Assembly (NCBI GenBank): GCA_051294905.1
Contig: CM119382.1
Span: forward strand, 9,300,001 to 9,364,000
Reading direction: 5' to 3'
DNA from: Botryllus schlosseri
Lineage: Eukaryota
Length of the DNA stretch: 64,000 nucleotides
Shown here: positions 1-18,600 of the stretch, piece by piece
Numbering within the stretch: the stretch's first letter is position 1
How the letters are laid out: every line of letters begins with the position of its first letter
The notes under the pieces: model-generated
Databases searched by the model: none
What the model was told of the DNA's origin: nothing
Seen by the model: only the letters and a program-made list of their open reading frames with translations
Made by a program: the position numbers and the translations under genes

Positions 1-2406
1 ATTGTATTGAGGTAAGTCGTGCGTACAAGGACAGCTGCATTTCCTGCGATAGAAGGTTATTACGAAATAAGTTTTATCGCGCAACCGATGGACTGAAACC
101 CTCAGTCGCGTGCCGACCACCGACCCAAATGACAGGAGTACAAAAATTCCGCGCTGATCATTGTCATTCGTGCAGATATGCCAAGCTGTCAACAATCGAG
201 CATGGAAGTCCGATAGTGAGACCGTTATGGTGGGTGAATCGTGAAGACTCGGTGACATATACTGTGGGCGATGAGTTCCTTATTGGAGATGAGGTTCTAG
301 TTGCACCGATTGTGCACGAAGGAACGACTTCTAGGGATATTTATCTTCCTGGTCCAGAAGGGTGGAAATGGAAAGATCAAAGAACGGGAGAGGTAAGTTA
401 TAACGACGTGGCTACTATAGTGTCAATTGTCGCTTAATTGCACCTTCTGAATTTAACAAAGTTTCTTCAAAAGTCTCCGTAGCTTTCACATATCACTTGT
501 CCGAAACGAGTTGTATAGGCTACGTTTAAACAGTTCGTTATAACACTTGCACCACTCTGACGCTATACGCTAGGGCAGTGGTGTCAAACATACGGCCCGC
601 GAATCAATTCTGGGTATATTGAAACATGCGTATATTATCCAGCACATTTGTACCAGATGTAAAGTTTTTTTTTATGAAATATTGCCATTAAGTGATCCCT
701 CAAGACAGCCAATGTCGAGCAAGTCCCTCGGCCACACACACCCGACTGCGGTGCTCGTGTATCACTCTATAGTTACCACTAGGAACAAGTCGGTGACTTT
801 GCACCGAATTTTGAGATGGCAAAAAGTGTACACTGAGTTCGTGGGAAAATGGACCAAACGTAGACCAAGCGAAAACCCCAATGCGGTACCTACGCAGTTT
901 ACATGGAGAATATATTGGTTTAAAAAAACATAATTCAAATATCTGTGGTAGCACTGCGGTGTCACATACAACTCAAAAGGTCCCCAGACCCCATACAAAC
1001 CCGAATCGCGATTTAATAATAAGAATACAAATTCCCACGTCCGCGTTTACATCTCTTGTCTTCTTCACTCCTCATACGCAGACCAGATTACGACTAAAGC
1101 AAAGGGAGCCTGCCAAATTATATCGTCGTTAGAGCCATTGTTTTAGCGGTTTATATCTGCATTCAATCAATCATTGTGTTTTTATCAATTCCATTGTTCG
1201 CGAATAAAGGTATCTTGCTAGAATAAAACCTCTATGATCCGTGGCACAATCACAATGTAATATACTATTATCTATATATACTTGAAATAAAGTATTCAGG
1301 TGAAAAGATAGGGCATGAAGTAATATTTTGAAATCAGTTGACTGGTGCGGCCGGCGAACGATTTGAAGGTTTGAATCCGGCCCGCGGCGCGATTTGAGTT
1401 TGACACCCCTGCGCTAGGGTTACCATATTCTGGAATCGGGAAGGAGGACACTTTTCACAAATCATAAAAGCTAGTTTACCGATATTTGAAAAGTGCTGAT
1501 TTTGACTTATTTAGTGGAAATTTTGTTGTGTTGACTAAAAAAAAAAAGATAATCACTTTGACTCAACTCCCGAATGACCCGCTCTAACGACCCCGTCACG
1601 CATTTCGCGTTATTTATGTTGATGTGCTGTTGACCCTGTACATTTAGTATGAAGGACATCTAGCAACCCTACGCTAGCCCAAACTAGACCATGAACTCCC
1701 TCCCTCACCATACAAAAATACGTCCCACACTTCTAAATAAATTTAAATTTTGATGTTTTATTCCTCTAGTACTAACTAATAGAAAAGCGCCCAAATTATT
1801 GCTCTCTGGAAATGAGATATATAATTCTAATGTATCTAGCGGACCGGGCGCGGGGGGAGGGGGGTAGCGTAGTGATGACAATAAACGTATACCCAGGCTG
1901 CCTCCTCCCCCACGTTGCTGTTCCTTACGGCGACAAAAAAGCCCAGAAAAATGCCCGATGAAAGGACGCACTCACAAGAAATGGAAAGTGCAAGAACGAG
2001 CCACGGAATAGAGTTTAACATCGAAAAAGAACTGTAACATCGAGCCCTAGGTCGAGGTCGATGCCAGTTTAAGATAACGCAACTGGTCGTTCGGCATTCT
2101 CCTATTTGTTTATTACGTCGCATTGTGTATTATCGCATTGTACATTGTGCGTGTCGTGATCAGATGAAAACGTAATCTGACGAATATTGATTAATGACCG
2201 ACAGAAAATGTGTCACGGACCGGCGTTCGAGGATCACTGGTGTATCGAATCTTGGGTGTATTTGACCCGATCGTATTCTGCACTGGTCCGATAACACCAT
2301 ACTGTTTCAGATCTACTCATCGTCACAGTGGCTTTCAGACTACGAGATTCCTCTGGAGGAGATTGCGTTCTTCAGCGCCATCAAGCCCCCAGAAAATGAC
2401 GCATAA
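1..2406 (+). CDS. MYORG: 3' end of a glycoside hydrolase family 31 gene, MYORG/NET37-like (last three exons; 5' part outside window)
   Basis: Exons <1-11, 176-392 and 2311-2406, with GTAAGT donors at 12 and 393 and CAG acceptors at 175 and 2310. Phases are consistent (2, 0). Translation: IVLRYAKLSTIEHGSPIVRPLWWVNREDSVTYTVGDEFLIGDEVLVAPIVHEGTTSRDIYLPGPEGWKWKDQRTGE|IYSSSQWLSDYEIPLEEIAFFSAIKPPENDA*. The PIVRPLWW, DEFLIGD-LVAP, RDIYLP and DY-I-LEEIAFF motifs match the GH31 C-terminus of the MYORG type. Orthologue versus paralogue cannot be decided here. Confidence 0.85.
576..1411. mobile_element. Non-autonomous hAT (Charlie-like) DNA transposon
   Basis: TIRs CAGTGGTGTCAAAC (576) and GTTTGACACCCCTG (ends 1411), with subterminal CGGCCCGC motifs. 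Perfect 8-bp TSD CGCTAGGG at 568-575 and 1412-1419. No intact transposase ORF. Confidence 0.9.
1415..1671. mobile_element. Degenerate TAGGG-type hAT MITE (same family as 4098-4488)
   Basis: Left end TAGGGTTACCATATT...GAGGACAC; right end CTAGCAACCCTA. Internal GTTGACTAAAAAAA is shared with 4098-4488. No clean TSD. Confidence 0.7.
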
Positions 2407-2492
2407 AGAAACGGAATTTGCATGAGTCACGTGATCATACTGGTGTTGATTTGAATTTATTGGAGCTTGAATAGTGGGGGTTATATAATTCC

Positions 2493-2498
2493 AATAAA
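2493..2498 (+). promoter_or_regulatory. Probable polyadenylation signal of the GH31 gene
   Basis: AATAAA 87 nt after the TAA stop at 2404-2406. Confidence 0.55.
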
Positions 2499-3569
2499 AT
2501 ACTTGTGTCGGAATATATCCGAAACCAATACTGACGATTGGGTTTGTTGAGCAGTAAGAAATTTACGCAGAAATTTGTTTAACAAGTTTGATCACTGATA
2601 CGAGACAAAAGTGGTGAGAATATTGCAAACGATGACATGATTTACCCTGATAAATCGATTGTATTACTACGTCCACTGCAGAGGGCTCAGTACAGGACTA
2701 CTTGCTTTTTCAGAGCATTCAAGTAGGTTTTGCATACTTGCAGTACTCACTCAGAAGGTAATGTTTTCTACATGAACAGTGAACACTTATCTAGGAAAAA
2801 CAACCTTCTGCTTACAATTTCGATATCGATATGTATAAACTAGTTTTGGGATCAGTTTGTATCACTCTTATGAGTGAAATTGGTATAAGAACTAAGTACA
2901 TGAATATCCCTGTACCACGGCAACAGAATATAGTTTCAAAATTAGCACCTATTTTTCGTGTCGACAGTCAAATGTCGTGAAGATAGACTACATCCGCGTC
3001 AGCGGTGTCTTACAAAAGCCTAGAGGTGGGCCGTGCTATAAGTCGGCAGTTACGGAAAATAAGAAGAATATCGGCCTGGTGTAAATGACCATGGTAGTCG
3101 ACAAACACCATGAATACCCCAAGAACAAACAAACAGACTACATCATTCTATTTCGAACGTGGCCACTTCTTGATTACCACTAAAAGTATGCGACCCCTCG
3201 AACAAATCTACTCTTTAAACTATACTTAATTGAGTAGGCCTAGGCCTACTTTTCAGGCTGTAATTTCCCATTGAAGTAGTTTTGTGATGTCTTGGAAATC
3301 GCTCCATCTTGTAATTGAGTAGAGATTTAGTGCATTATTATTCGTCCTCTATTTGAGTAGCAATTGACCATTTTGACAATCGAACCTCTGGTCCGTTTTG
3401 ACTCGCCAGTATTTCATCCCGCCATGTTGTCTGTCTTTTGTCTCGTGCACTGGAGTTGTATATGCTCGACGTGACAGAATTCTCGACAATGCGACCGCGC
3501 TCGTGTAAAGATACGCACAACAGGCAGGTTTGTTTTTGTGAACTGCTTTGTTGTAGTATGACACTCTCC

Positions 3570-3996
3570 CATGGCTTGTAATTACTCAACTCGTTACTTC
3601 GTGTGTTGGGTCGACTTGTACTCGAGTCATTATGCATGACTGGACCAAGTAATTTGATTGCAGACATTTCTATTTATGACTTGATACAAGAATCGTGCAC
3701 CAGGACTGATAATTGATAAATAGGCCTAGAAACAGTTTAAATAAATTTCTTAAGAGTGAAAAAACTGAGCATTTATGAATGCGAGGCCTTCGATATCGCC
3801 CAAAAACTTCAAAAAGTAAGTTGGACATGACTTGAACTCAATAATGAATAGTGAACAAAATTACTTTTACTCGCACTCGAGTCTCGACATTATGACTCGG
3901 TGCATGGTGAGTTGTAAATGACTCGAATAGGAGTAGAAACTATAAAAGTAAGATTGACTTGTGACTCGGAACTGTGTGAGGTTGGCTACAACCCTG
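3570..3996. mobile_element. GACTCGA-rich MITE, copy 1
   Basis: Ends CATGGCTTGTAA and GGCTACAACCCTG, with many GACTCG sub-repeats. Flanks CACTCTCC/CACTCGCG (6/8) suggest a decayed 8-bp TSD. Collinear with 10363-10800. Confidence 0.75.
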
Positions 3997-4097
3997 CACT
4001 CGCGCATTTTGATTGGTGGCTGGCCACTGATTCCTAACTGCCAACAGCTTGAGAATGATTCATTGTACCCCATCATCCATGGTTAGACACCTTTACT

Positions 4098-4488
4098 TAG
4101 GGTTACCATATTTTGGAAATCTAAAAAGAGGACACTTTTTTCAGAAATTTGAGACTTGCAAAACCGGAGAAGAATTCTCAAAAATCGGTGAATTTTTCCC
4201 ACTTTGTGATCGGTTGACTAAAAAAAGGGCAATTTTCACGCTCAGAGCCCAAAATACCGTTTCTTCCTCCACATTGCCGGGTGGTTGACTAAAAAAAAAG
4301 GTCAACTTTTCGCCCAGCCGGAGCGTCACTTCTGTGCTAATTTACGGCGTACTCGTATTCTGCTCTAAATATGACCTAAATTTTCAGAAGAGGACAAAAT
4401 CTTAAAAAAGAGGACAAAAAGGCGTCCTCCGAGGACACTTTCAAAAAAGGGGACAAATCCTCTTAAAAGAGGACGTATGGTAACCCTA
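4098..4488. mobile_element. hAT-type MITE
   Basis: Perfect 13-bp TIR TAGGGTTACCATA/TATGGTAACCCTA. Perfect 8-bp TSD CCTTTACT at 4090-4097 and 4489-4496. Repeated AAAAGAGGAC subterminal motifs. Confidence 0.92.
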
Positions 4489-4735
4489 CCTTTACTTACG
4501 TCCACTTTTCCATCTGTAATCGGACGTATTAATAAGCACCGTCCTCTATTTGCTTGTTGTAAATATGCATGTATGGTTGTATACTGTCTAAACCAGGCGT
4601 CACCAACTCAACATTGATCGCATTTCCAAGAGAGCCAGTATTCCAACTTGGTAGGCGCCGCCGGCCAAAACTTGGCAATATCGAAAGGCAAAGGTTCTGC
4701 GATACTGCTATTGTCACTCAATGCACTCTATAACC

Positions 4736-5001
4736 CAAGGGTCGGGAACCTTTTCTATATACCGGAAATCTTGTGTCGACTAATAAAAGGTCATCGCTTT
4801 GTCTCGACTCCCGCATCACCCATTTTTTACGTCAGGCTACTTCTGGGGTGTTGACTAAACATTTTAAAGATTTTACTCCCGCGCAACCACCTTTTAGTCC
4901 GTAAATTAAGGTCTTCCATATGTTCCCGACCTCTGCTATAACCTTTTTACGTTCAGTATATGTCCTGGTGCTACATGCGGCCCACGAGTTAGTGAGCCCT
5001 G
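4736..5001. mobile_element. Degenerate Charlie-like hAT MITE
   Basis: Left end CAAGGGTCGGGAAC; right end GCGGCCCACGAG...GAGCCCTG followed by GTCTAAAC, a Charlie-type target. The left flank matches only loosely. Confidence 0.45.
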
Positions 5002-5363
5002 GTCTAAACAGTAGCTGTTTGTAACTAAATGATTTCCCAATCTGTTGCTACAGTCTGCTTTTGCCAAATATACCCATAGGTATTCTATAATAGCGGCCTG
5101 GAAGCAGTGTGTCTACCATACCCCCCAAATACGAAATACTCATACATTTATGATGCCGATGTATTATTATAGACGGCAACAATATAACACATCACACATG
5201 CAAATATCAGATCGATTACAATATGGTACGCCAGTCCCCGTTTCCAGCCGTGTCTTTAAAGAACGCTCTCATCTGAAATGCATCGCACCAGTATGAAAGT
5301 CAAAATCGAAATTATCCTTTACGGCTTCAGGCTTGGGGCGCACGGTGGGAGCAGATCTACAAT

Positions 5364-9600: not shown

Positions 9601-12600
9601 ACTAGCAATAGCCCAAGGTCCAAGGTTACTGCCACAAGCATCTTTACAAAATTCTAAAAGCATAAAGTAATTCAAGTTTGCAAACTGTTGAAGTATTGTT
9701 GCTTGTAGATACAATAGTAAAATCTCCCATACCTAATGCTAATACAAGAGAACTCAAAAGTATAATGACCATGGTTAGTGGTTGCTATCCAAATGTACTG
9801 TTCTATTACACAGGTGCGGCATACCAGACTCGCTACACTTACTCTTTCATGTTTTTCTTCAAAGGTTTCCTGATGGAGAGGGTAGCTTTACTGCTGGCAG
9901 AGCCTGCCGCATTGGTAGCAGTGACTTTATAAACCCCGGCGTCAGGCTGAAACACATCTTTCACAGACATGTAGAACGACTGCTGGTCTTCCCAGACCAT
10001 CTCGTGATGAGCGTCAGCTGTCAATCGCCTTCCATCTTTCTCCCTGCGATCAGAGACGCTCAAAAAAGTGACTACAACAAATCGAAGCGGCACTTACCAA
10101 ATTAATTCCGGTCTGGGTTGACCCGAGACTCGTATTTCAAATTTCGCGACCTGACCCTCGTGGACAAGCTGATTGGTCAAAAGTCGACGGAACGACGGAC
10201 GCAAAATGACCTCGTCCTTGTCCACTTTTTCTGTTACAGAGCAAATCATGAAATTAATGAAAAAGGTATGTGATAACCAGAGGTGATGAAAGTAGTCAGT
10301 GGGGCTACTCAAGTAGAAGTAGAAGTTTAGCAGCAAATTTCTACTCAATTACAAGTAGAAGACATGGTTGTAATGACTCGAATCGAGATTTTTTGGTGAC
10401 TTGACTCGAGTCCGTTTTTTTATTGACTCGACTTGTACTCGGGTCATTGTGCATGACTCGGGACTGGGACGGCCAAGACAGACATTTCATTGTAACTTCG
10501 AAGAATAATAAAGTTACCACATTATTGGTCTATCAGTCCCGATACTTGGAAAACAGGGCTAGAAACTGTTAAAACTGAGGCATATTACAATATTATGAAT
10601 GTGAGACATTCGGGATCACTCGAGCAGAGTTAAAAAAAGTGGGTTGAACCGGATTGAACTAAAAGCTGAACAGTGAACAAATGACTTGGACTCGGACTGG
10701 ACCCTCTACTAGCTGACTTGGACTCGGGCTTGACTCGAGTCAAAACTATAAAAGTGAGAATGACTTGTGACTCGAAACCTGTGACTTGGTTACAACCCTG
10801 CAAGATATCACTAAGAAACCCGAATCTTGATAACTTTTAACAACAATTTAACAGTAAGAGGCCACTTCATAAATTGCAGGACATATCTATGCGACTAACG
10901 CAAACTGAGGAATGACACTGGAAATAGGTAGATATTTGACAATATATCCGCTTACCGTGACACATGGGATATTTCATGTGATTCTAATGGCAATTTTAGT
11001 CGTAAAAATGATGCAAACTTATCACGAAAACCCAGGGTGTGAAAAGTAAATATTTTTTGCATAGCCACTGTTCAACTAGAAGTAGAAGTACTCTAAAAAC
11101 ACTTGAATAGACATGCCCAGTACTCAAGAAGTACTATGTGTTCCGAAAAAGTAGAATAACCTCGTTGTTGACCACTTCTGATAATAACAGTATTAATCAA
11201 ATTTTTCTACATACTCTTCACAATCAAGCCGGCCTTGCAAGTGTCATCCCCATAGCTGTTGCGAGCAATCACCACAATATCCCCGGCATCATCATGATCA
11301 CATTCACATATCGTGAGCTTGTAAAGGCCAGGCTCCTTATCCTCTTTGTATTTTTGATCGTCCGGTGCGAAGTGAAGACGTTTTCCGTTATGATACCAGA
11401 ATATGATTGGAGTTGGGTGGATAGTCACTGTAATATTGTGTGATCAGAAAATGCTGCTGCTACAGCTAACATACACATTCCTTGACGGTGGTATGATTTT
11501 TAGTGATGATACCCGTACCATAGATAGCTCAAGAATGAAGGAAGTTCATAGAATATTCAATAACTAATGTTCAATGTTCATTGATGCAACTAGACCATAT
11601 AATTCATACTTTAAAGTTGATTCACAATTTAATAACTGCCGCACAGCGGTGGTTACAGTACCTGTAACTGTGAAAGTCACATCACCGCCCTCAAACACAG
11701 TGCGGTTGTACAGGGGAAGAGTAAACTCTGGCGAATGCCGAAGAGATCTCATAACATCCAAGCCTGTGCGCTTGAGAGCGTTCTTGTGCTTTGCGAAGTA
11801 AAGACTGCGGGGTGACCGCGTCCATTTTCTGCCAAGATTTCACAGTTTTTCATTCAAACGACGGATGTATTGAGAAATCTATCATACCCTGATTTCAGAT
11901 GGACGCAAAGTTCACACTGCCTCGTGGTTGATCCGAAAGAGTTTTCCACTTTGCATCTGTACGTGCTATCGTCGCTTTTCTGTATGTTCGTTATGAGAAG
12001 CGATATAGTGCAGTTTTCCTCGTCCCAGGAGAATTGATATTTATCGTTCTCTTCAAGACGAATGTTGTGTTTGAACCTAGAAATTAGAGATATTGCAGAC
12101 CGGCAACAGGGCGGTACCTTTTGCTCAAATAATGCAGATGCTGCTGTTGGAATCAAAAGTACCTTTATCGGAAGTACAAAGTTAAAAATATATACCAGGC
12201 TGCAAGTATATAAGACTCAATTTTTGATATTGACACCATTTTTCTGGAAGAATCGAACTGTCAGAAGACTTGGATCATTCGTTTTTTGAATTTTCGAACA
12301 AAATATTATAAAACTTAACCTATTGCATATATAGGCTATATTTAGGCTGGTGCCAAAATCAACCCCACACTCACACATGTCTCACAATCACTGTAGTAAT
12401 GGTCTTCAGTTTACTGAAACTGTAATCATTCCGGTATTCTTGGTAATATAATGAAATACTCCTACTATTTCTGAATACTGCAGCAGGTCTGCCTACTTTC
12501 ACTTCACAGGCCTAGAATATTCCTTCTCACTTACTTTGAAATCTCTATTTCTACTTGCACTTGAGTAGAAATTTATGAAGTTACTTTTAGTTCTACTTGA

Positions 12601-15600
12601 GTACCCATGATGACTACTCAGGTGCGAAGTCACAATTACAGAATTACAGGCTTTTAAAATTCAAGTTCCCAATGCCTACCAAGTTATATTTTCATCCCCT
12701 TCTGGATCGTAGATCGTGAACTGCAGCAACGCATCACAACCCTCTTCCCCAAACTGATGACACATAACCCCGAGTCTGGGGTTCATGTCGACGCTCTCGA
12801 TTTTGAGCTTTGCGACCGACTTTCCTTTGTATGATCTCAGCGACCCGCCAAACGCCAGACGTCCGAGCGATATGACCACAGTGGACGTCTCCAAGATTTG
12901 GTTTGCTTTGAAAAATTTACGATGTAGTATCGTTGGTATCACTTGCTCTCGCTTTGCGGTTTTCAAATCTCCGTCGGCGTGACAGCTTGTCTCCAGCCAG
13001 GGATGACGCAAGGCGTCTTCCGCAGACATACGTTCTCTCTTTTCGCGTGCCAAAAGCCTACGGAATTAAGAGAATGTTATGTTTGTATGCCATAATACGA
13101 TTATAGGAATAGGGTGTATTTTCTTTCCCCGATGTTTATTCATCAACTCATGATATACATACACACAATATGCGCATATGCATGCAGTTTAAACATACTT
13201 TCTGAGGAAGTATTACAATACAAATTCGCCTACCTTTCTATGAAGTCCAGAGCTTCGTCAGAAATGTCGCTCCAAGTTTCGTGATTGAAATTCCACTCGG
13301 CTTCGGTAACATTTTTCAAGGTTTCGTTATCGTTTTCTCCTTTGAAAGGAGACAGTCCAGAGAGCAAGACGTAGGTAAGCACACCCACGGACCACATATC
13401 GGTTGCACGCCCGATGGCGTCATTCAAGATAACTTCTGGCGCACAGAAATCAGGCGTTCCGTACGCGATACGTAGCGTATCACCCGGTTTCAATTGCCGG
13501 GACACTCCAAAATCGACTAGCTTCAACACATCACTCTTCCTTGTTTTGAAAAGCAAGTTCTCCGGTTTGATATCCAAATGCGCGATGTTGTGCGCATGCA
13601 AGAATTCCAATGCCTGATAAATCAATCAGTCTTGAAATGCAACACAAATTTCATGATGGAATACATACTTGACATATCTGCCGTGTAAAATCTATACAAA
13701 CGTTTTCCGTCAAGTCAAATACGTCGCTGGTAATCCGTTCAAACAAATCGCCGCCAGACACAAATTGCATGATCATAGTCTGCAGAATAATAAATTGTAC
13801 GTAGGAAAGTATGTGAGGATGTATAGCACTTGAAGGAGTGGTGAAGTAGTAGTCTAATTTGAGACAGTATTGCACTCCCAGCAAAAGTATACTACTATCC
13901 ACGTGGTGTTACCAAGTTAATCTCTGTCATCTCTGGGCAGCCTTTACTGACACTACAGTGTAAGCTGTAGTAAATTTTCGATGGTAAACATTTGTGGTTT
14001 CTGGAGACCGGTCAGCTAAAATAAATCAATTTCAAACCAGTCCGTGGAGCAAAAACGGTTGCCGACAGCTGTACTAATAGACTTGGAGAGCAATAGTCCT
14101 GGAAATGATTAGAATTCAAAATCTTTTTTGAATTTGAATTTTAAACTTGGGACCTTCATATACTTACTGAATAGCTATTCGCCTATATATGAGTGATCAA
14201 GCATCGAGATATACCACAACAAGCACAACAACAAAGTCATTAATGTTCATGCTGAATCAGACAAAAATGTGGATGTAAAATGATATCCAAATATATATAC
14301 TGTACACTACACAGTTGTCAAAGCTCTTTTCATTGCTGTCAGGGTAATTTGATTGGACTGACGAAAATCTCACAAATAAATTGCAGTTATACAGTATTAT
14401 AATCCTCACAATTTATTTCACCTATGATATCCCTCGAAGCAACAAACACTCACGGTTTCGTCTTTGGTTTCAAAGACTTCGTGCAGCATCAGCAGATTGG
14501 GATGCTCCAGCTGTTTCATGATTGCGATTTCCCTTGCGACAGCGGCTTTGTTTGCATCGTCGTCCAATTTTACGATTTTCGCGGCCCAAATTTTCTTTCC
14601 GGCTATTTCCTGAGCGCGGTGCACATTGCCGAAAGCGCCGCGACCAAGTTCCTCCAGGAGGTTGTAGCGCGTCAGAACGTTAACGTCACGATGAATCTAA
14701 GATAATTCATTGTGGTTATGGTCTAATTATAAGATACTAGAAATGTACTTTATTGCGAATTAATTTTTCTCCTTACACAAGGAAAATAAGAAGTTTTGAC
14801 TGTTTTATCTACTTCGTAGGAGTTTCCTTCCATTCTAGGTTACATAACAGCTTTTTCAACAGTGCAGAGCTAATATTCGAGTCATTGAATTCGAACTTCA
14901 GAAAAAGTGACCCAAACAGACTAATAATATATTCTTCATCATGTGGGGAACAAATTGAATGAAAGTTTAGCATCAAAGATCTTTAGTTCATTGTGTCCTC
15001 GCAAGGTTAAGGTTAAGAGCCAAAAGAGAGAGAAAGAACAGTTCATTTATGCCAGTTATATCTGCCTGTGAGGCTGCGTCTATGGGAGAGTCTCTGAAAA
15101 AGTGGTGCTGGGAATAATGGTTATTTGATCCTTGGGTAGTGACGGCTCTAATATTCTCCAATATTTGGGGGTAGCATGAAGCATAAAACAGTGTTTGGAA
15201 TATTAACAATTCAAGTAATGAAACGGCCAGCCAAATCTTACAAAAAGCTGGTTAGTCTGGAAAAAGTTGTGCCACCCTAGATCTCGGAAAATTCTCATTA
15301 TAATAATACATTCATGTACCTTGACATTTCTAGATACACAATCCTCGCCGACATCCACCATTTCGTCATAAGTAGCCGCCATAGTCGGATCTTCTTTTGT
15401 GGTAACAATACCAGTCGGCACAGACGGCACGCTCCTCCCACATTCGTTCACCGCACAAACCCTGAACTGATAACTGGTTCTCCCGGACAGACCACATACA
15501 GTATAATGAGAAGTGCTCGAAGAAGACACCTTAATCCAACGCCCGCTAAACGCCATCGATTTTTCGATAACGTATTTCAACACCGCTTTGCCTCCGTCGT

Positions 15601-18600
15601 CTTTTGGCGGATTCCAAGACAAATCGACAGCGTCGCGAGATATGCAAGACACCTGCAGCCGTTCTGGTTGAGAGGGTACGTCAGCAACAATCAGTTCCAC
15701 GGTTGCTTGATCGCTACCAAATCGGTTGTTTATGGTGATAGTATAGAACCCAGTGTCGTATCTCCAAGCATCTTTGATAGTCAGCGTTGTTGTAGACGGT
15801 GTAGTTATGATTTCATATCCACTTACTTCAGAATTGATAGCCTTGCCCGATTTAGTCCAAGTTACTAATGGAGCAGGGGAACCTTCGATAGGCACTTTCA
15901 ATACGACACGTTCGTGAATTTTATACCAAATCGGCTCTTCTGACATATATTTCGGCACCAACACTTTAGCCGGTACTTGTATTATGACTCGTACCGTATT
16001 TGTGACGTATCCTCCGACATTAAAAGCTTTAACCGTGTACGGCCCTTCGTCATTTGCATTTGCTTTCGCGATGGTCATGTAATAATTGTTTCCTCGTCCG
16101 TACCTCATGCTGTGTTTAGAATCTTTTACGATTTCTCGCGTGCCCTTGTACCATTTGATAATCGGCTTTGGATGTCCCGTTACTTTGGCATATAACGTAA
16201 CATTTTGTAGAGGTTTCGCGACTACATCGCGCATTCTCTCTATCAGCCTCGGCTTTGTGATATGCACGTTGTCCTTTATTGTGATAGAGGATGATACCTC
16301 AGATACATCTGACGTTCCGAATTGATTCTGTGCCGATATCCTGCAGAAAAACATGACACCTAAAACACCACAAACAGGATCTCTATACTCTTGGAATATT
16401 TCATTAGTGCTGTGTTGTTATTTAGTTATTTTTGTAGATAAATTTGGCTCTGTTATACATTAACTGTGCTTTGTTACATGAATATCACATGTAACATACC
16501 TGAATTCGTAGGACAAGCCCGGTTTCAATTGATATATGGGGCACACTGTTTCTGTAATGGTATTCTTGGTGGCGATTCTCCATTCTGATTGCTCCGTATC
16601 TTTGATTTCGATCAGATATTTTTTGACATGTGCCACATCTGCTGATGCCGGCTGACTCCAGTTCAGCAAACATGCATCCGCGGTAATGCCAACAACCTAC
16701 AAATAATCAATGTAAAATCGATCGTCTGAAATATATTAACGTATCCTACCGATACTTTGCTCGGAGGCAAGGGTTTTTTGCCACGCACGTCGTAGGTGCA
16801 TTTTTGGCTGGCGCCGCCAGTTATCTTCGCAGATTGCTTGATTTCCACAGACTCGCTGAGTCCACCTTCATTCGCCGCCATGATTTGAACCCGGTAAGAA
16901 CCTTCTTCAATCGCCGTCACCGAGTAATGGGTGAATCTAATTGGATTGGTGTTGCATCTACGCCACATATCCTCATCCTAGAGCAAATTACGTTTGCACA
17001 CTTCAATCGACTGAGAGAAATATAATATTGGTGGCTAACGTTAATAAAACATTGGTATATATGTAAATGATGATGGGTATGAAGCAATCATTCCGTACTG
17101 GTTTGATACACAAGGGTATTTATTTTTAAATCCAAAGATCTAATCCACTGAAATTCTTATATTTTCGTCAGATCGAGGTAAATGCCAATTTGTGAACTTG
17201 CCTTCTTCATTTCAATAAAATATCCCGAAACTTTATTCTCGTCGCAATGCTCTGGTTTATCCCAAGCCAATGATATTGTATTTTCAGTAATTTCCACAAC
17301 TCTTGGATTTTGTGGTGGTGACGGTGGTTCCAGCTGGTCCCGACATAAAACCACTGCTGTCTGCTCGCTTGGCCTGGGAAACTGATAATGAAAGTGACTA
17401 GAAAAACATTGCGACTAATCGTAGCTTACCTTCCCTCTCCAATTTTATTGATAGCAATGACACGGTGCACGTAGCTGACACCTTCAATCAGTCCGTAACT
17501 GGTGAACCAAGTCTCTTTGACGGGAGTATGAGTTGCCTTTGTCCATCTCTTTCCCTGATAAAGTAATCCACAATTAGTGAATCCTTCACGTTGTAAATTA
17601 ATATTGCATATATCATACTTTGCATAAGATAAGTATATATATATGTCTGACAATATTACACCAACCATGTTCCTGATCATTCTGTTTTCAGTTTTCTATG
17701 AGGGGGTTCGGGAGACAGTGTTGAACAAATGAGTTATATCATAATACAGGGCTACAGCTCTGCCTGCCTTGAGTTGGCTATATATATCCAGAATTAGCAG
17801 AAAATATTTACTCCAGTACGAATATTCACACAATTTCAATTCAATATAATTTATTGCTAAAAATTTTATCATCCGGCGTTATTTACAAGTCAAAACTTGA
17901 AGTAGTTATGTACAGTATTCATTATGTAAAGACGATAGTAACCAATATATGCGTTTAACTGCGTGCACTAAAACAACACCTTCATACAATAGCTCACTCC
18001 AGCCAACCAGTTGTATGACGGGGCAATAGGCAATATCACTTTCTTTAAGGAAGATGACTCAATCAAAACTACTGTATGTCAACTTGAAAGCGGCCAGCAA
18101 GATATGCTTGATCTAGAAATTTTGTATTAATGTGTATTTGCTCACATTTCTCGCCTTTCGTTCCACTACATATCCAATTATATCCGCCCCTCCATTATTA
18201 ACAGGCTCCATCCAGTTAATCGATATCGAATCTCTAGTGACCTCGGTGACTTTAGGACATCCAGGCGCCCCTGGTAAACCTGAAAAAATTGACACTCAAC
18301 TGTCACGATATCGCAACGAAATGTTACTTTCTTGGATCAATCAATTCAATAAACGTGAAATTAATCAAAAATACAAACTGTTGGACGTACTAAATTCGTA
18401 TTTGGCAGTGACACTGTCAGATAGAAGAGGCTGACCGACACCAAATCGATTTTGAGCCGAAACTCTAAAAAGATATTCGGCGTTCTCCGATAGCTTTGTA
18501 ATCTTCATCATATTTCTAAAAAATATGAAGCATATACGGTAATACTGCCGGCTACAAAGAACAATATAAAATTATCACCTTGTCACAGTATCGCTTACAA

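Follow-up and report, generated by a model that had tools for sequence, protein, structure and literature searches.

A 64,000-nucleotide stretch of Botryllus schlosseri DNA (assembly GCA_051294905.1, contig CM119382.1, positions 9,300,001 to 9,364,000), called here the window and numbered from its first letter, carries on its minus strand a gene with a protein kinase domain and a C-terminal regulatory tail at 12781-14696. This gene, as set out below, is assigned to titin (connectin), and its kinase has a complete set of canonical catalytic motifs. Vertebrate titin kinase is currently regarded as a pseudokinase, in contrast to the active kinases of protostome twitchin, TTN-1 and projectin (PMC4042850). 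This dichotomy between active invertebrate and inactive vertebrate kinases was proposed in 2014 on the basis of these protostome proteins; whether titin kinase has any substrate at all has been disputed for decades. Titin/connectin genes with A-band repeats and a kinase have been reported in Ciona and amphioxus (Hanashima 2012; Ohtsuka 2011, as cited in PMC12198301), as has synteny of the ascidian connectin gene with a WNT cluster (PMC12198301). The gene in the window is very probably one of this kind.

Gene structure, expression and motifs of the kinase

The stretch at 12781-14696 is not a single open reading frame (ORF). It consists of four exons separated by GT..AG introns, which upon splicing give one uninterrupted reading frame through kinase and tail. 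Exon 1 matched the Pfam model Pkinase at positions 1-72 (E=4e-14) and exon 3 at positions 110-241 (E=3.9e-35). Transcript contigs of RNA run X1, labelled as the same species, span the junctions 15320 to 14696, 14454 to 13779, 13669 to 13613 and 13234 to 13057, and one of them runs on from 12680 into the next exon, starting at 12076. Because these contigs carry every splice junction of the kinase, the gene model is confirmed: the kinase gene is real and expressed. In the bulk RNA runs X4, X6 and X8 there were almost no reads on the kinase stretch, and the X1 contigs were the informative ones.

Between the window and the transcript contigs 39 exonic differences were counted, 27 synonymous and 12 amino-acid replacements, and none of them touches a motif; kinase exons 1-3 account for nine synonymous and four replacement differences. 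These within-species differences were used in place of a between-species ratio of non-synonymous to synonymous substitution rates (dN/dS), which was discarded: at a protein identity of 61-73%, synonymous sites have reached saturation. Four of the 12 replacements fall inside five codons (12972-12984, minus strand) of an insert reading CHADGD in the linker before tail helix R1. This insert is missing from vertebrate titin kinase, and the clustering therefore marks it as a locally unconstrained spot. A few X4 reads partly overlap 13148-13181, in the intron that separates exon 3 from exon 4, and continue at both ends into unrelated sequence. This points to a short, repeated element rich in CA/TG and not to a transcribed intron.

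The features of the region are collected in Table 1. The motifs of a competent kinase (GxGxxG, the beta-3 Lys, the helix-C Glu, HxD...K..N, DFG and APE) are complete in the spliced translation. A preliminary description of the window, made from the sequence alone, had listed GRGAFG, AAK, the Glu of REIAIM, HLDIKPEN, DFG and YGTPDFCAPE; all of them were found on the minus strand where it had placed them, DFG at exactly 13506-13514, and GGSLRSYKGKSVAKLKI, also among its motifs, is present as well. The Tyr-Asp pair (YD) in the N-terminal linker and the R-7x-R motif of the tail, both also common to twitchin, are present too. Identifiers of the titin pseudokinase have been defined by Dorendorf, Gravenhorst and Mayans 2026 (PMC12862963). 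None of the three marks, namely theta-x-K, E-F/L/M-G and a small residue at position -2 of R-7x-R, occurs in the window kinase, which has AAK, DFG and Leu at these places. Helix R1 reads LHRKFF, against [R/K]H[R/K]RYY as published, so that the His, the basic pair and the aromatic residues are kept and the motif as written differs.

Table 1. Positions of exons and motifs in the kinase region of the window
Feature	Position	Strand	Basis or remark
Upstream exon: two immunoglobulin (Ig) domains, one fibronectin type III (Fn3) domain, N-terminal linker with YD anchor	15320..16417	-	Pfam I-set x2 and fn3; open frame from 16417 taken
YD anchor motif (Tyr-Asp)	15370-15365	-	in N-terminal linker, reads TYDEM
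Kinase exon 1: Gly loop, beta-3 AAK, helix-C Glu	14454..14696	-	translation, Pfam, Protein Data Bank (PDB) alignments, RNA junctions
Gly loop GRGAFG	14645-14628	-	translation
Beta-3 AAK	14585-14577	-	translation; Lys codon 14579-14577
Helix-C Glu of REIAIM	14531-14529	-	translation
Kinase exon 2: beta-5/hinge to helix E (TMIMQFVSGG...TRQICQ)	13669..13779	-	translation, splice sites, RNA junctions
Kinase exon 3: catalytic loop, DFG, RQLKPG, P+1 loop, C-lobe to helix I	13234..13613	-	translation, Pfam, PDB
Catalytic loop HLDIKPEN	13580-13557	-	translation
DFG	13514-13506	-	translation
RQLKPG	immediately 3' of DFG	-	translation
P+1 loop YGTPDFCAPE	13463-13434	-	translation
Kinase end and C-terminal regulatory tail, then first half of M1-like Ig	12680..13057	-	translation, PDB phmmer, RNA junction
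Tail helix R1 LHRKFF	12927-12910	-	translation
Leu at -2 and R-7x-R, LGRLAFGGSLR (R-LAFGGSL-R)	12867-12835	-	translation
Tail strand GKSVAKLKI	12825-12799	-	translation
M1-like Ig, second half (FKHNIRLEEN...CELCVHLKSG)	11888..12076	-	splice sites, RNA contig run-on, Pfam I-set, PDB
Next M-band-like Ig, begins PEFTLPLYNRT	11210..11839	-	two ORF pieces (approximate extent); Pfam I-set, PDB titin Ig matches

Past the apparent 3' end of the gene, positions 1-5300 of the window hold short ORFs only, on both strands.

Relationship to titin and twitchin kinases

The domains around the kinase were compared with known structures. Residues 56-353 of the upstream exon align collinearly with positions 5-304 of PDB 2NZI, which is human titin A168-A170 (E=2.8e-71), whereas Fn3 alone matches in the case of twitchin 3UTO. 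For exon 3 the top match is human titin kinase 1TKI (E=3.2e-43), with twitchin second (1.7e-40). The tail exon, searched with phmmer, found titin kinases only (6YGN, 8.6e-17; 1TKI, 3.2e-11; medaka 9QJ2, 4.2e-9), and no twitchin match to it was obtained at E<=0.01. Matches to the M1-like Ig include titin M1 2BK8 and 6YGN, and the Ig that follows begins with PEFTLPLYNRT, the same as in human titin after M1. Human titin kinase (1TKI, 4JNW, 6YGN) and medaka TKb (9QJ2) lie at the same place, in the order A168-A170, linker, kinase, tail and M1, and they have in common with the window kinase the fold family, YD, RQLKPG after the DFG position, R-7x-R and the strand G-x-SVAK-x-K.

Exons 3 and 4 served as queries in word-indexed protein searches for relatives, whose contigs were then looked up in assemblies and metagenomes; the full sequences were spliced by eye. 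Five further full kinase and tail sequences were obtained (L001; L002/L003; L007; L004-L006, with extra copies L013 and L021; L008-L010), together with two partial ones, P0151 (82% identical) and P0152/P0208 (95% and 89%). In the kinase domain the five full sequences share 61-73% identity with the window, and the six have the same residue in 119 of 256 columns. The start PPEFTLPLYNR of the Ig after M1 recurs in L004 and L008. Together with these six tunicate-like rows, the tree set (45 rows) held 15 vertebrate titin kinases, including those of reedfish, frog and reptiles, MLCK-type kinases, three twitchins (ostracod and nematodes), two nematode TTN-1 kinases and an obscurin/SPEG-type outgroup. 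Maximum-likelihood trees were built with IQ-TREE under LG+C20+F+G4, one with linker and tail and one on the 256 kinase columns. It can be seen that, first, the tunicate-like clade (100/99) is sister to the vertebrate titin kinases (100/100), including those of human and medaka, with a support of 99/96 when linker and tail are used and of 98/91 on the kinase alone. Secondly, twitchin is the next branch in both trees. TTN-1 follows directly after twitchin only when linker and tail are included; in the kinase-only tree MLCK-type rows stand in between. Forcing the tunicate-like clade to group with twitchin cost 10.8 log-likelihood units and was rejected by the approximately unbiased (AU) test (p=0.0225).

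A gene of the twitchin or projectin type, whose canonical kinase would be uninformative on the history of titin kinase, draws some support from raw scores. The mean identity of the window kinase is 46% to vertebrate titin kinase, 48% to twitchin and 48.7% to TTN-1, and the top PDB match of the N-lobe exon is Aplysia twitchin. However, the vertebrate stem, at 0.69-0.74 substitutions per site, is long when set beside the tunicate-like stem (0.25-0.30), and this accounts both for the low raw identity and for the N-lobe match; raw identity was dropped as an orthology test because of the length of this branch. As it is not higher to vertebrate titin kinase than to twitchin, orthology is visible only in the tree and the flanks. 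There the sister relation in both trees, the AU test, a tail exon that matches titin kinases only, an Ig-Ig-Fn3 array that fits A168-A170 over its full length, and RQLKPG and PEFTLPLYNRT in common with human titin leave a twitchin-type gene very improbable. We therefore assign the gene, from flanks, tail, trees and AU test, as an orthologue of titin (connectin) and not of twitchin. The preliminary description had likewise read the flanks as titin rather than twitchin and had proposed a tree as a check; the 2NZI alignment, the tail matches and the AU test agree with it, and in the trees the kinase groups with vertebrate titin kinases, not with twitchin or MLCK.

The twitchin kinases of Caenorhabditis elegans (1KOA/3UTO) and Aplysia (1KOB) are like the window kinase in their canonical motifs, in YD and R-7x-R, and in Leu or Ile at -2; autoinhibition by the flanking tails is a mechanism that they likely have in common with it (PMC12862963). 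They differ in that they are not the nearest clade, have a tail without detectable similarity and match upstream in Fn3 alone, and in a P+1 loop that reads GTAEFAAPE instead of GTPDFCAPE. Nematode TTN-1 kinases (P0148, P0067, P0087) also have canonical motifs, a P+1 loop GTP-x-FCAPE with the Cys, and a bulky residue at -2 (Ile, where the window has Leu). Unlike the window kinase, they branch outside twitchin and titin kinases, and their tail ends in ...GRLAKRGAIF, with the second Arg of R-7x-R missing.

Wider searches were made for further chordate sequences. No titin kinase from a tunicate, amphioxus or cyclostome came up in an exhaustive search of representatives with exon 3; its top single-domain matches were 54-57% identical, and multi-kinase proteins dominated the ranking. 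A search seeded with reedfish titin kinase and aimed at cyclostomes and sharks gave bony vertebrates only among the best 120 matches listed. A metagenome scan with the C-lobe alignment added only further copies from the L004 species and a nematode TTN-1-like locus.

The relatives also differ in exon structure. Four of them have one ORF, over 2500 residues long, that extends from the A-band Fn3/Ig domains through the linker into the kinase N-lobe (L001 2348-9874, L002 2228-9820, L004 2433-10034, L007 2072-9628), and the same stretch consists of many small exons in the window (13234-64000) and in L008. An intron lies directly after KPG-D/E-G, between DFG and the P+1 loop, in all five relatives (L001, L002, L004, L007, L008). 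Exon 3 of the window (13613-13234) crosses this site without an intron, which was therefore lost in the window or gained in the relatives.

Motif states in tunicate-like and vertebrate titin kinases

The motif states were then compared across sequences. All six tunicate-like kinases have GRG-x-FG, A-x-K (as AAK, AIK or AVK), the helix-C Glu, HLD-I/V/L-KP-E/D-N, DFG, GTPDFCAPE, YD, R-7x-R and Leu at -2 of the latter, and the partial relatives P0151 and P0152 agree with them. Helix R1 of the relatives reads L/RHRKFY, RHRKFH or LHCRFY. Every twitchin, TTN-1 and MLCK outgroup in the tree has canonical motifs.

Fragments of titin kinase from bony vertebrates (teleosts, reedfish, frog, reptiles and birds) gave a different picture. 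Of 116 fragments, 100 begin the x-x-K motif with Met and 16 with Leu, and none begins it with Ala. At the DFG position E-L/M/F/I/T-G was found in 111 of 120 fragments and D-M/V-G in nine, with no DFG. Position -2 is occupied by a small residue (Ala, Val, Ser or Gly), most fragments have Arg for the catalytic-loop Lys, which birds keep (HFDIKPDN), and the P+1 residue is variable. Compared with the human and medaka kinases, the window kinase has A-x-K for Met/Leu-x-K, DFG for EFG, ELG or EMG, Lys for Arg in the catalytic loop, GTPDFC for TAPEYY in the P+1 loop, Leu for a small residue at -2 and, in the tail, the deviating helix R1 preceded by an insert of about eight residues.

The preliminary description had given the human states as YMAK, HFDIRPEN, EFG and TAPEYYAPE, and these are read directly in the PDB alignments (tymakfvkv, hfdirpen, iefgqa and ftapeyyape). 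The four positions are those mutated in human titin kinase by Bogomolovas et al. (PMC4042850). The change at these positions was not a single package: theta-x-K and E-x-G are general in vertebrates, whereas the Arg of the catalytic loop does not extend to birds and the P+1 Tyr is mostly restricted to mammals (PMC12862963).

A regain of Ala-x-Lys, DFG and the -2 Leu in the sea-squirt lineage, from an ancestor of tunicates and vertebrates that was already degenerate, would give the same states. Residues of tail and pocket co-vary (PMC12862963), so a coupled change is conceivable in either direction. However, at least three coordinated reversals would be needed against a background of tree outgroups that are all canonical, and a single change on the vertebrate stem accounts for all rows. 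We give such a regain very little credence.

One member of the clade departs from these states. P0145 (Logan SRR25569779, a 1520-bp contig) is a C-lobe fragment of titin kinase, placed within the tunicate-like clade by a quick tree with a value of 99 in the Shimodaira-Hasegawa-like approximate likelihood ratio test (SH-aLRT) and on a very long branch (1.41). Its motifs are HLDIQPAN, DLG and YSTLEFSAPE in place of the HLDIKPEN, DFG and YGTPDFCAPE of the other members, and one tunicate lineage or paralogue may have lost catalytic residues independently.

Probable mode of action of the kinase and timing of the vertebrate change

Ala-x-Lys, DFG and Leu at -2, kept in all six tunicate-like sequences, make up the published signature of active twitchin-type kinases. 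In twitchin kinase A34M, D147E or both abolish activity and A34V does not (PMC4042850). Leu or Ile at -2 marks the active twitchin, TTN-1 and projectin kinases, and the size of the -2 residue anti-correlates with that of the first residue of A-x-K, a volume compensation between beta-3 and tail (PMC12862963). An active state of the window kinase is thus well motivated. Preferably, then, the kinase of the sea-squirt titin orthologue keeps the ancestral catalytic machinery and works like twitchin, and the vertebrate kinase lost canonical binding of ATP and Mg after the split between tunicates and vertebrates; we put the probability of this reading at roughly two in three.

The domain would be a non-RD kinase of the CaMK group that is shut off by its own tails. 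At rest the regulatory tail is predicted to plug the active site, with the short helix R2 in the ATP pocket and its -2 Leu stacked on the small beta-3 Ala of Ala-x-Lys. The first Arg of R-7x-R would clamp the hinge and the second would pair with the catalytic Asp, and the strand GKSVAKLKI would cover the substrate groove. In the working sarcomere the tail may be pulled or displaced, plausibly by strain at the M-band as proposed for titin and twitchin, and its release would permit normal binding of ATP and Mg and phosphotransfer. In the vertebrate lineage Ala would have changed to Met or Leu and Asp to Glu, and the -2 residue of the tail would have shrunk to Ala, Val, Ser or Gly, along an unusually long branch.

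Alternatively, the protein may be a true titin orthologue with canonical motifs that serves mainly or only as a scaffold, a role ascribed to vertebrate titin kinase, the motifs being kept for nucleotide binding or stability of the fold, or the tail never being released in vivo. The autoinhibitory elements YD, R-7x-R and GKSVAKLKI are all conserved, the window has a collinear counterpart of A168-A170, the module to which MuRF1 is recruited in human titin (PMC4042850), and P0145 indicates that a clade member is able to lose catalytic residues. Yet every catalytic residue is unchanged in all six lineages, although they differ from one another at over a quarter of their kinase positions, and a pure scaffold would have no reason for this; among the residues kept are the catalytic-loop Lys and Asn, the Asp of DFG and the GT of the P+1 loop. 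Moreover, twitchin, TTN-1 and projectin kinases of the same signature are active enzymes (PMC4042850, PMC12862963). A scaffold role is accordingly unlikely, at about one chance in five, though it is the likeliest of the alternatives weighed here.

Several points weigh against the twitchin-like, active reading that we prefer. Canonical motifs are necessary for activity and not sufficient. The tail may dock differently, because R1 is LHRKFF rather than [R/K]H[R/K]RYY and about eight residues are inserted ahead of it. P0145, inside the same clade, is without the catalytic-loop Lys and the Phe of DFG, and catalysis is therefore dispensable in at least one lineage or paralogue. On the side of orthology, the raw identities and the N-lobe match to Aplysia twitchin give titin no advantage, the AU probability is only 0.02 with a thin sampling of protostomes (three twitchin and two TTN-1 rows), and the tunicate identity of the relatives is deduced rather than documented.

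With regard to timing, every outgroup is canonical, and a single change, on the branch that leads to the sampled vertebrates, is enough to account for all rows. This places the conversion after the split between tunicates and vertebrates. The preliminary description had dated it to the vertebrate stem. The part of this that stands is a date after the tunicate split; the stem itself is tighter than a sample of bony vertebrates allows and is an upper-bound bracket, not a date. The conversion to a pseudokinase thus holds only as bracketed, later than the tunicate split and earlier than bony vertebrates. A stronger version, which we regard as an even bet, is that a bona fide sea-squirt titin has a truly active, tail-gated kinase, that the pseudokinase arose only in the vertebrate lineage through a burst of sequence change (its stem being about three times longer), and that tunicates may have repeated the loss at least once, in P0145.

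The 2026 survey of 320 teleost and 139 mammalian sequences termed titin kinase 'specific to vertebrates', and no tunicate, amphioxus or lamprey is named in its text or supplements (PMC12862963). Our literature search, which covered papers available without subscription, found nothing on the catalytic motifs of an ascidian titin kinase. What is new here is that the dichotomy of 2014 would be extended to a true titin orthologue, a refinement of the known picture and not an overturning of it. A canonical kinase with titin flanks in the sister group of vertebrates places the loss within chordates, after the tunicate split, and this independent lineage supports the proposed co-variation of the beta-3 residue with the -2 residue of the tail. 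If the stronger version is true, the sea-squirt protein would be a natural 'active titin kinase' for finding substrates and for tests of activation by force, both of which are unsettled for the vertebrate domain. The sea squirt is a model animal whose muscle is simple, and its tractable protein makes tail-gated catalysis testable in titin itself.

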